DNA from: Macrostomum lignano
Taxonomy: Eukaryota
Assembly (NCBI GenBank): GCA_002269645.1
Contig: NIVC01000735.1
Span: 310,001-374,000 of the forward strand
Direction of reading: 5' to 3'
Length of the DNA stretch: 64,000 nucleotides
Part shown: positions 13,283-16,200 of the stretch, piece after piece
Position numbering within the stretch: position 1 is the stretch's first letter
Layout of the letters: each line of letters opens with the position of its first letter
Notes under the pieces: model-generated
The model's input: only the letters and a program-made list of their open reading frames with translations
Database searches by the model: none
What the model was told of the DNA's origin: nothing
Made by a program: the position numbers and the translations under genes

Positions 13283-16200
13283 TCAATCCTTGGCGAGGTC
13301 TAGCAGCTCGGCCAGCTCCGGCTTCGGGTGCGGCGATGTGCCCAGCAGCTCCAGCAGCTGCTCGTGCCCGAGCTCCTCCTTGGCGAGCAGGGCGCGGGCC
13401 ACCCGGTCCAGACGGCCCCGGTTGCTGGCCAGAACCTCCCTGCTCGGATTGGGGCAGGGACGAGACGCTTTGTTAGAATGAGTAGGACTGGGGGAGGTCG
13501 GTGATCGCACTGGGGGAGGTCAGTGACCGCACTGGGGGAGGTTAGTGACCGCACTGGGGGAGGTCGGTGACCGTACTGGGGGAGGTTAGTGACCGCACTG
13601 GGGGAGGTCGGTGATCGCACTGGGGGAGGTCGTTGACCGCACTGGGGGAGGTCAGTGACCGCACTGGGGGAGGTCAGTGACCGCACTGGGGGAGGTCGGT
13701 GACCGCACTGGGGGAGGTCGTTGATCGCACTGGGGGAGGTCGGTGACCGCACTGGGGGAGGGGGGAGTCTCACCTGGCCAGCCGGAAAGCCTGGCCCAGC
13801 ACTGCCTGGGCCTCGCTGTCGAACAGGGCTTCGGTCCGGCGCGAGAAGGGCCGAACTGGCGAGTTCACGGAGGCGGACTCCTGGTCGAAGCTGAGGTGGC
13901 CGATGCGGTCGGACATGCCCAGCTCGCGCACCAGCCTGTAAGCCAAGTCGGTGGCTGCCCGCTGCTCATCGCTGCCGCCGCTGCTCACCGTGTTGAAGGC
14001 GACCGTCTCAGCGGCCCGGCCGGCCAGCATGCAGGCGATGGCCTCCAGCAGGGCCTGGCGGGTGTACAGCTTTCTGTGGGACGGAGTTCCAGTTCACCTG
14101 TCCGTGCTCAGAGCAGCTACTAGACTCCCCCAGCTCACCTGTCCGTGCTCAGAGCAGCTACTAGACTCCCCCAGCTCACCTGTCCGTGCTCAGAGCAGCT
14201 ACTGACCCCCCCAGCTCACCTGTCTGCTCAGAGCAGCTACTAGACGCCCCCAGCTCACCTGTCTGCTCAGAGCAGCTACTAGACGCCCCCAGCTCACCTG
14301 TCCGTGCTCAGAGCAGCTACTAGACTCCCCCAGCTCACCTGTCCGTGCTCAGAGCAGCTACTAGACTCCCCCAGCTCACCTGTCTGTGCTCAGAGCAGCT
14401 ACTAGACTCCCCCAGCTCACCTGTCTGTGCTTAGTCGCTGCAGACCGGCTCCGGCACCACCGCGCCTTCGGACAATGCTGACTCGAACCACGGGCGGGGG
14501 CGTCTCCAGCATCCAGGCAACCAGCGCCTTGCCGGCCTCGCTGTAGGCGGTGCGCTCCCGCTCCTCCTTGGTCATGGGGGCCGGCCGGGCCGGCTTCTGG
14601 GCGGCCGCCCGCTCCAGCGCGGCCTCAAAATCGGCGGCTTCAACGGCCGACTTGGCATGGCGAGCGGCAATCAGCGCCGCCTCGTTGCAGACGTTGGCGA
14701 TGTCTGCGCCCGACCGGCCGGGGGTCAGCGCGGCCAGCCGCTTGCTGGGGTGGGCGGTTGATGATGGTGAAGGTGAAAATGGCATATCCCTGCTCAGCCT
14801 GGCATATCCCTGCTCAGCCTGGCATATCACAGCTCAGTCTGGCATATCACAGCTCAGTCTGGCATATCACAGCTCAGCCTGGCATATCACAGCTCAGCAG
14901 CCTGGCATATCCCTGCTCAGCCTGGCATATCCCTGCTCAGCCTGGCATTCCCTGCTCAGCCTGGCATATCCCTGCTCAGCCTGGCATTCCCTGCTCAGCC
15001 TGGCATATCCCTGCTCAGCCTGGCATATCCCTGCTCAGCCTGGCATATCCCTGCTCAGCAGCCTGGCATATCCCTGCTCAGCAGCCTGGCATATCCCTGC
15101 TCAGCCTGGCATATCCCTGCTCAGCCTGGCATATCCCTGCTCAGCCTGGCATATCACAGCTCAGTCTGGCATATCACAGCTCAGCCTGGCATATCACAGC
15201 TCAGCAGCCTGGCATATCCCTGCTCAGCCTGGCATATCCCTGCTCAGCCTGGCATTCCCTGCTCAGCCTGGCATATCCCTGCTCAGCCTGGCATTCCCTG
15301 CTCAGCCTGGCATATCCCTGCTCAGCCTGGCATATCCCTGCTCAGCCTGGCATATCCCTGCTCAGCAGCCTGGCATATCCCTGCTTAGCCTGGCATATCC
15401 CTGCTCAGCCTGGCATATCCCTGCTCAGCAGCCTGGCATATCCCTGCTCAGCCTGGCATATCCCTGCTCAGCCTGGCATTCCCTGCTCAGCCTGGCATAT
15501 CCCTGCTCAGCCTGGCATTCCCTGCTCAGCCTGGCATATCCCTGCTCAGCCTGGCATTCCCTGCTCAGCCTGGCATATCCCTGCTCAGCAGCCTGGCATA
15601 TCCCTGCTTAGCCTGGCATATCCCTGCTCAGCCTGGCATATCCCTGCTCAGCAGCCTGGCATATCACAGCTCAGCAGCCTGGCATATCCCTGCTCAGCAG
15701 CCTGGCATATCCCTGCTTAGCCTGGCATATCCCTGCTCAGCCTGGCATATCCCTGCTCAGCAGCCTGGCATATCCCTGCTCAGCCTGGCATATCCCTGCT
15801 CAGCAGCCTGGCATATCCCTGCTCAGCCTGGCATATCACAGCTCAGCAGCCTGGCATATCCCTGCTCAGCAGCCTGGCATATCCCTGCTCAGCCTGGCAT
15901 ATCCCTGCTCAGCAGCCTGGCATATCACAGCTCAGCAGCCTGGCATATTCCTGCTCAGCCTGGCATATCCCTGCTCAGCAGCCTGGCATATCCCTGCTTA
16001 GCCTGGCATATCCCTGCTCAGCCTGGCATATCCCTGCTCAGCAGCCTGGCATATCCCTGCTCAGCCTGGCATATCCCTGCTCAGCAGCCTGGCATATCCC
16101 TGCTCAGCCTGGCATTTCACAGCTCACTTGAAGTTGGCCGGCAGCGCCGCCAGCTTGTACTGGCCCAAGTACAGCGCGAACAGCTCCTGCCGCTCAATTA

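Follow-up and report, generated by a model that had tools for sequence, protein, structure and literature searches.

What becomes of a subunit of an AAA protease once its protease site is gone, and why would an animal keep it? The question is raised by a gene in a 64,000-nucleotide stretch of the Macrostomum lignano genome (assembly GCA_002269645.1, contig NIVC01000735.1, positions 310,001 to 374,000, forward strand; the whole stretch is called the window here, and coordinates are counted from its first letter). An earlier note, made from the letters alone, had flagged positions 13774–14744 as part of a gene for paraplegin (SPG7), an FtsH-related protein, whose M41 peptidase domain appeared to be dead. 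We find that zinc ligands are lost in a protein with intact ATPase motifs and a retained fold, and that this condition is conserved among flatworms under purifying selection. On these observations, the SPG7 orthologue of flatworms probably turned into a pseudoprotease long ago and has been retained in the m-AAA complex as a subunit that serves as an ATPase or a scaffold. The sequences themselves were already public, annotated as paraplegin or HflB metallopeptidase. The earlier note knew of no such case for animal SPG7, and we likewise found no description of a dead active site in a flatworm paraplegin, or in that of any animal, in the open-access literature.

The flagged interval takes in exons 5 and 6 of a minus-strand gene (25098–13283), whose seven exons encode an 833-aa product. 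GT and AG bound all six introns and the reading phase closes at every junction, including a phase-2 junction (AG/A) that links exon 1 in frame with exon 2. In sequence, the product matches NCBI PAA77565.1 (hypothetical protein BOX15_Mlig000349g2) along its entire length at 100% identity. The seven-exon open reading frame is intact, as had been proposed. GC content at third codon positions is 0.88 over exons 2–7, and no second copy of the gene was detected within the 64-kb window, where tblastn matches were confined to these seven exons:

Exon 1, 24587–25098, minus strand: start codon, presequence-like N-terminus and first hydrophobic segment (24669–24625).
Exon 2, 18186–18753, minus strand: intermembrane-space-type loop domain and second hydrophobic segment (18365–18312).
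Exon 3, 17140–17445, minus strand: N-terminal part of the AAA domain, with Walker A GPPGCGKT (17283–17260) and pore-loop-1 EVIGGLG (17190–17170).
Exon 4, 16128–16462, minus strand: Walker B IIFIDELD (16441–16418), sensor-1 AATNR (16288–16274) and the SRH (second region of homology) with both arginines (16255–16226).
Exon 5, 14421–14744, minus strand: AAA lid and sensor-2 (14710–14672), start of M41, and SEAGK at the HExxH position (14542–14528).
Exon 6, 13774–14073, minus strand: M41 core, with SGGSDE (13982–13965) placing E718 at the position of the third zinc ligand, an Asp.
Exon 7, 13283–13439, minus strand: C-terminal helices of M41 and stop codon.

The protein has the domain order of the FtsH/M41 family: membrane anchor, AAA+, AAA lid and M41. 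Its first 94 aa contain no acidic residue and 13 Arg plus Lys; this presequence-like N-terminus, with the two hydrophobic segments (residues 144–158 and 301–318), would fit the usual topology. Pfam recognizes AAA at residues 412–546 (3.6e-40), AAA_lid_3 at 576–615 (1.2e-11) and Peptidase_M41 at 631–812 (9.7e-39), and the top solved relative in HMMER searches is human AFG3L2 (6nyy, 1.5e-119). Walker A, Walker B, the sensor-1 Asn, the SRH arginines and sensor-2 are all kept. The earlier reading of the ATPase motor was therefore right about the Walker motifs and the SRH arginines, but it mistook FVE for the pore loop; pore-loop-1 is the IGGLG that follows.

The M41 domain does not share this integrity. 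The minus strand at 14545–14513 reads TAC AGC GAG GCC GGC AAG GCG CTG GTT GCC TGG, which places SEAGK (residues 642–646, codons AGC GAG GCC GGC AAG, 14542–14528) where HExxH was expected, confirming the anomaly that first drew attention to the gene. When HMMER aligns the protein with human AFG3L2 (6nyy) and with the FtsH of T. maritima (2ce7), the counterpart of this motif is AYH(E/Q)AGHA (the 6nyy construct itself has HQAGH), and S642 and K646 align with the two zinc histidines. The codons show that AGC to CAY and AAG to CAY each take two substitutions, in keeping with the two or more per histidine counted previously. In the same alignments the segment VSSGGSDEQ lies on TTGAQDDL and TSGAANDI, with E718 of SGGSDE on the ligand Asp. 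Here the claim that all three zinc ligands are replaced needs tempering: both histidines are lost, but the third change in M. lignano is a conservative Asp-to-Glu, and full loss of this ligand (to Tyr, Leu or His) is seen only in the neodermatan relatives described below. The catalytic-base Glu of HExxH is kept (Glu643), and the active-site edge strand has changed from the canonical ALGFAQ to GAGLQR. Catalytic competence in M41 takes HExxH and a downstream Asp, both of which are absent here; by these motifs, the M. lignano protein is a homologue of the FtsH/M41 family but no peptidase.

Aligning flatworm orthologues, a check that the earlier note had suggested, revealed what that note had missed: the loss is not peculiar to this gene. 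Among the best 120 matches to the full protein, the full-length sequences from outside Macrostomum all carry HExxH, except a Logan transcript, P0056 (QEAGR). An M41-region profile was searched exhaustively with HMMER against 1.84 billion representatives. Its top four matches scored 462, 367, 306 and 274 bits, compared with 247 or less for the rest, and all four lack HExxH; three are named 'Paraplegin', from Schistosoma japonicum, from Echinococcus granulosus/multilocularis and from Cichlidogyrus casuarinus, a monogenean, and the fourth is an unnamed protein of Dicrocoelium. (A previous M41-only, word-indexed profile search gave mostly short fragments and missed the full-length relatives, although it yielded T. 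regenti and a second M. lignano locus.) With a full-length family profile, 29 flatworm members scored 924–1195 bits, versus at most 688 for canonical SPG7 among the matches listed:

Cestode members: Taenia, Hydatigera, Echinococcus, Hymenolepis, Rodentolepis, Schistocephalus and Spirometra.
Trematode members: seven schistosomatids, Fasciola, Paragonimus, Opisthorchis, Calicophoron and Dicrocoelium.
Other members of the 29: one monogenean, Macrostomum and two Logan transcripts, P0056 (SRR21676486) and P0439, which cluster with the trematodes.

None of the 29 has HExxH. The position reads (Q/M/H/S)E(A/S)G(R/K) in every member, with an invariant Glu; the second His is Arg throughout, or Lys in Macrostomum, and the ligand Asp (0/29) has become Tyr, Leu or His in neodermatans and Glu in Macrostomum. 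Walker A and B, sensor-1 and the SRH are intact in all 29. A His at the first position, as HESGR, occurs among the schistosomatids only. Our searches recovered no planarian, polyclad, catenulid or other-Macrostomum orthologue, and any dating of the loss among flatworms consequently depends on two distant lineages. Transcript-like sequences exist for relatives, namely S. japonicum C1LDY8, which we take to be derived from cDNA, and intron-less Logan contigs of 2.5–2.8 kb. Depositors of flatworm genomes, S. japonicum, E. granulosus, T. solium, F. hepatica and H. microstoma among them, named these proteins 'paraplegin', and a degradome survey of T. solium counted three M41 genes as proteases without mention of a missing active site (PMC4070553).

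Several lines of evidence connect these proteins with paraplegin, as the earlier note had proposed for M. lignano. In BLASTP comparisons the M. lignano protein scored 447–463 bits (50–52% identity) against canonical SPG7 and 381–390 bits (44–45%) against the AFG3L2 clade, and its top named matches are all paraplegins. Pore-loop-1 is of the SPG7 type, IGGLG, as opposed to the FVGVG of FtsH and the AFG3L2 clade (EMFVGVGP in the latter), and the 13-aa pore-loop segment is identical to that of a primate SPG7 (P0101, named Pan troglodytes). A neighbour-joining tree (386 columns, 200 bootstraps) grouped the M. lignano protein with the neodermatan proteins at 84% bootstrap, the neodermatan clade itself receiving 100%. 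The flatworm group fell within SPG7 sequences and apart from a well-supported AFG3L2 clade, with moderate support (70%) for the node separating the two. Proteins from an oyster and from Seison and the Logan transcript P0361 attach near the flatworm clade at 34, 34 and 11% support, respectively. M. lignano and all neodermatans also have in common derived residues at sites that are near-invariant in canonical SPG7, including A to V in LVKAL, Y to F in IIFIDE, P to A, the A in ALVAW and V to A. These comparisons support assignment of the M. lignano gene as an SPG7-clade m-AAA homologue, and the most parsimonious history would have the zinc site lost once, before Macrostomorpha and Neodermata split.

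Among canonical SPG7 proteins, identity is 57–58% for M41 and about 76% for the AAA core; between them and the M. lignano protein, it is 36% and 68%, respectively. Because the drop in M41 exceeds that in AAA, M41 appears disproportionately accelerated, as expected after loss of catalysis. The domain nonetheless remains under evident constraint. The ratio of non-synonymous to synonymous substitution rates (dN/dS), computed for M41 and AAA separately by the Nei–Gojobori method, was 0.05 and 0.02, respectively, between Taenia solium and T. asiatica, and 0.11–0.12 and 0.02 between Taenia and Echinococcus. Of 190 M41 columns, 55 are at least 90% conserved in the flatworm set, versus 56 in canonical SPG7. 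An AlphaFold2 model of residues 368–833 reached a mean predicted local distance difference test score (pLDDT) of 85.6 and a predicted template modelling score of 0.77. Its best fold match was human AFG3L2 (6nyy_F; template modelling (TM) scores 0.83/0.84, 43% identity). Lower matches were FtsH, YME1 and the chains of FtsHi, the plastid FtsH homologues that lack HExxH (8xku and 8xqw among the fold matches; TM 0.58–0.73, 29–35% identity). Confidence was lowest (pLDDT below 50) at model residues 303–305, which lie in the former active-site edge strand (the substrate-binding LGF). The dN/dS and modelling checks, both suggested beforehand, agree with the earlier idea of a retained gene: the M41 domain of flatworm paraplegin is under purifying selection and has kept its fold.

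Retention is also apparent within M. lignano, whose assembly contains three loci of this gene: the window locus, L009 (NIVC01002944.1) and L002 (NIVC01003234.1). L009 holds a second intact 833-aa open reading frame with canonical splice sites, identical at 830 of 833 aa. Between the two coding sequences (99.6% identical, exon 5 100%) there are nine differences: six are synonymous, and the three non-synonymous ones (R29Q, H114Q and S246P) are all N-terminal, with none in AAA, lid or M41. If about three-quarters of sites are taken as non-synonymous, the binomial probability of three or fewer among nine is about 0.01. Every intron differs in length between these two loci, and introns and flanks are 90–98% identical. 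L002 is a degenerate or poorly polished copy that lacks exons 3 and 4 and has single-base indels, with 14 gap openings in exon 5. It carries TAC AGC GAG GCC GGC AAG just as the window locus does, and SEAGK is therefore present at 3/3 loci. The idea that L002 might be an HExxH-containing paralogue was rejected: the locus is this gene again in degenerate form, SEAGK included. An assembly error at the motif was likewise rejected, because the two other loci carry the identical six codons. The three loci may be homeologues, recent duplicates or haplotigs.

How might such a protein work? The retained FtsH architecture predicts that it can still bind and hydrolyse ATP and join a hexameric ring, while cutting of peptide bonds should be impossible because the catalytic zinc cannot be coordinated. 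Human m-AAA proteases are AFG3L2 homohexamers or alternating AFG3L2/paraplegin heterohexamers, in which zinc is held by two His and an Asp (PMC12994072). The flatworm protein may similarly share an m-AAA ring with an AFG3L2-type partner, as the earlier note had proposed. The partner would supply the active sites, as in the alternating mammalian hexamer, and the flatworm protein, itself non-proteolytic, would help to pull substrates with the energy of ATP, to assemble the ring and perhaps to choose substrates. The basic residue at the second His position in 29/29 members may fill the vacated metal site. More tentatively, and with somewhat more doubt than confidence, we suggest that conversion to a pseudoprotease happened once, on a stem lineage leading at least to the rhabditophoran flatworms, and that the converted gene is their sole SPG7 orthologue.

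Several points weigh against these proposals. Proteolytically inactive human paraplegin (E to Q) failed to rescue SPG7-null phenotypes (PMC7553352); protease-independent function is thus not the rule for paraplegin, and the flatworm case would be a real departure from the mammalian one. The AFG3L2 partnership, the complex, the mitochondrial location and a transcript in M. lignano are all putative, and no gene for the partner came up in our searches. No canonical flatworm SPG7 was present among the best 120 matches of the full-protein and family-profile searches, but flatworm genomes were not searched directly, and the best-scoring canonical representatives (scallop, fish, tick and fungal proteins) are uninformative on whether flatworms have one. 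In Schistosoma (S. bovis, L007, versus S. rodhaini, L008) dN/dS was 0.53 for M41 and 0.36 for AAA, the whole gene changing much more quickly than in taeniid cestodes (0.02–0.12). Deep nodes were weakly supported, in trees built by neighbour joining only. Finally, a single ancestral loss, although parsimonious, is unproven, because identity of the M. lignano M41 domain is about as high with canonical M41 (35.8%) as with neodermatan M41 (36.7%).

Alternative explanations were considered against the same evidence. The gene could be a diverged extra paralogue, a neofunctionalized duplicate in animals that also keep a canonical HExxH SPG7. Direct genome searches might turn up further flatworm M41 genes, M. 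lignano carries many duplicates, this gene itself being present at three loci, and the oyster, Seison and P0361 proteins near the flatworm clade could hint at an old spiralian paralogue. Yet the canonical SPG7 matches listed included no flatworm protein, as against 29 members without the zinc site; it is exactly these proteins that depositors of several flatworm genomes call 'paraplegin'; the three T. solium M41 genes fit the usual set of SPG7, AFG3L2 and YME1L (PMC4070553); and all three M. lignano loci encode SEAGK. We therefore regard this explanation as unlikely. About as unlikely, in our judgement, is that the protein acts outside the AFG3L2 protease, as a homo-hexamer or with other partners, in an ATP-driven unfoldase or translocase resembling the Ycf2–FtsHi motor. 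FtsHi complexes show that M41 pseudoproteases can form non-proteolytic motors (PMC9020784), the ATPase motifs of the flatworm protein are all intact, and its N-terminal intermembrane-space domain has diverged, such that Pfam FtsH_ext (PF06480), found in canonical SPG7, is recognized in no flatworm member. Set against this, M41, which forms the base of the ring, is still under purifying selection, the pore loop lacks an aromatic residue as in all SPG7, and the modelled fold is closer to AFG3L2 than to FtsHi in both TM score and identity. To our knowledge, mammalian paraplegin forms no homo-oligomers. A review lists it solely as a heterohexamer with AFG3L2 (PMC12994072).

The two remaining alternatives would remove the pseudoprotease altogether, and we give both very little weight. 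That the protein is still a protease, using a non-canonical metal or mode of catalysis (for example, Glu643 with Glu718), draws on the invariance of the HExxH Glu in 29/29 members and on the acidic residue at the third-ligand position in M. lignano. Most members, however, have neither His ligand, neodermatans have Tyr, Leu or His as third ligand, Lys or Arg at the second His cannot bind zinc, and the LGF edge strand of the M. lignano protein is degraded as well as modelled at low confidence. We know of no M41 enzyme that functions without both histidines, and consider this reading highly improbable. Still less credible, and largely refuted, is an artefact or a dying gene, with either a mistake of assembly affecting the motif or a pseudogene in neutral drift. 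The state of L002, with exons 3 and 4 missing and many single-base indels, could suggest it, and the M. lignano motif codons are known from genomic DNA alone. But the motif codons are identical at three loci, two of them with intact 833-aa open reading frames and canonical splice sites; synonymous differences outnumber non-synonymous ones six to three, with none of the latter in AAA or M41; the same loss appears in orthologues from three parasitic classes, with cestode M41 dN/dS of 0.05–0.12; and the sequences of relatives that look like transcripts speak for expression there. A pseudoprotease subunit of an m-AAA complex thus remains the explanation that we prefer.

The surroundings of the gene are rich in repeats. 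Minisatellites with periods of 20–41 bp and up to 65 copies fill most of every intron and both flanks, and all six introns vary in length among the M. lignano loci because minisatellite copy numbers differ. In the intron 5 minisatellite, whose unit is 41 bp, each copy contains a GT donor motif. The arrays lie at the following positions:

Minisatellites, window positions 11656–12840, 13487–13761, 14089–14431, 14780–16126 and 16605–17049.
Minisatellites (continued), window positions 17491–18142, 18766–19254, 23813–24509 and 25241–26000.

Intron 1 also houses a Ty3/gypsy-type long terminal repeat (LTR) retroelement (19262–23812, plus strand), located within a 29-bp minisatellite. Its LTRs of 178 nt (19262–19439 and 23635–23812) are 97% identical, and it has one long open reading frame with RVT_1, RNase H and integrase. 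Intron 1 of L009 is 956 nt long and lacks the element, which points to a recent insertion. A NUDIX-domain gene (window ~11240–11683 and further downstream), likewise on the minus strand, directly follows the paraplegin gene on its downstream side, a pairing kept at 3/3 M. lignano loci. After that of the retroelement, the longest open reading frame in the window encodes 1040 aa (45372–48494, plus strand) and has no Pfam match.

One open question that underlies hereditary spastic paraplegia type 7 is what paraplegin adds beyond AFG3L2 homo-hexamers. Flatworm paraplegin, long conserved with its protease site missing, is a natural evolutionary experiment on that contribution, indicating that the ATPase and ring-forming parts can suffice for selection on the gene, and the conserved dead M41 indicates which M41 surfaces serve non-catalytic needs. 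If the conversion did happen once and left no other SPG7 orthologue, the m-AAA proteases of a whole phylum have operated with proteolytic sites on AFG3L2 alone for hundreds of millions of years. The finding would extend the FtsHi concept, in reviews so far bound to plastids, to animal mitochondria, and corrects the annotation ('paraplegin', 'ATP-dependent metallopeptidase HflB') in many parasite genomes. M. lignano and planarians are tractable by RNA interference, making the idea directly testable.

Comparison with known systems sets the flatworm protein apart from each of them. With animal paraplegin it shares architecture and orthogroup, 50–52% identity over AAA plus M41, IGGLG, EMDGM, the SRH arginines, sensor-2 and the M41 fold. 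It differs in having SEAGK for HExxH and Glu for Asp, in an M41 identity of only 36%, in an FtsH_ext domain that Pfam does not recognize and in an SRH that reads RAGRFDR instead of the canonical RPGRFDR. Engineered active-site mutants of m-AAA subunits (yeast Yta10/Yta12, human SPG7 E to Q) also yield hetero-hexamers with one inactive subunit type, and yeast with the site of a single m-AAA subunit mutated is still respiratory competent; in those mutants the catalytic Glu was changed, whereas flatworms lost the metal ligands and kept the Glu. The closest known functional analogues are the FtsHi proteins of plants and algae, FtsH homologues with a working AAA module and an M41 domain without HExxH that serve as essential non-proteolytic subunits of hetero-hexamers (PMC9020784). 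The M. lignano protein likewise keeps the AAA module and lacks HExxH, but its descent from animal SPG7 places it outside the FtsHi lineage, with an independent origin in a plastid-less animal and a presumably mitochondrial location.

Outside flatworms, SPG7- or AFG3-like proteins with a degenerate HExxH were found in the oyster Magallana gigas (XP_011446512.2, P0303/P0395; YYEAGR, with the ligand Asp kept), whose cluster has 69 members, many of them transcript contigs, in Seison nebaliae (KAI3388926.1, P0341; IHQSS) and in P0361 (YYLAGQ). Further degenerate motifs (FHEAGR, YRECGK and FHEAGK) occur among P0302, P0272 and P0299 (Palmaria palmata). The oyster, Seison and P0361 proteins resemble those of flatworms in belonging to the SPG7 clade, in keeping the Walker motifs intact and in having a zinc motif that is degenerate. 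Because their replacement residues are different and at most 34% support joins them to the flatworm clade, their losses are probably separate from the flatworm loss, which suggests that SPG7 or m-AAA-type subunits are prone to repeated loss of the zinc site. If the oyster and Seison losses are indeed separate, SPG7 would be predisposed to this fate, its essential contribution being that of an ATPase, a scaffold or a selector of substrates rather than proteolysis.

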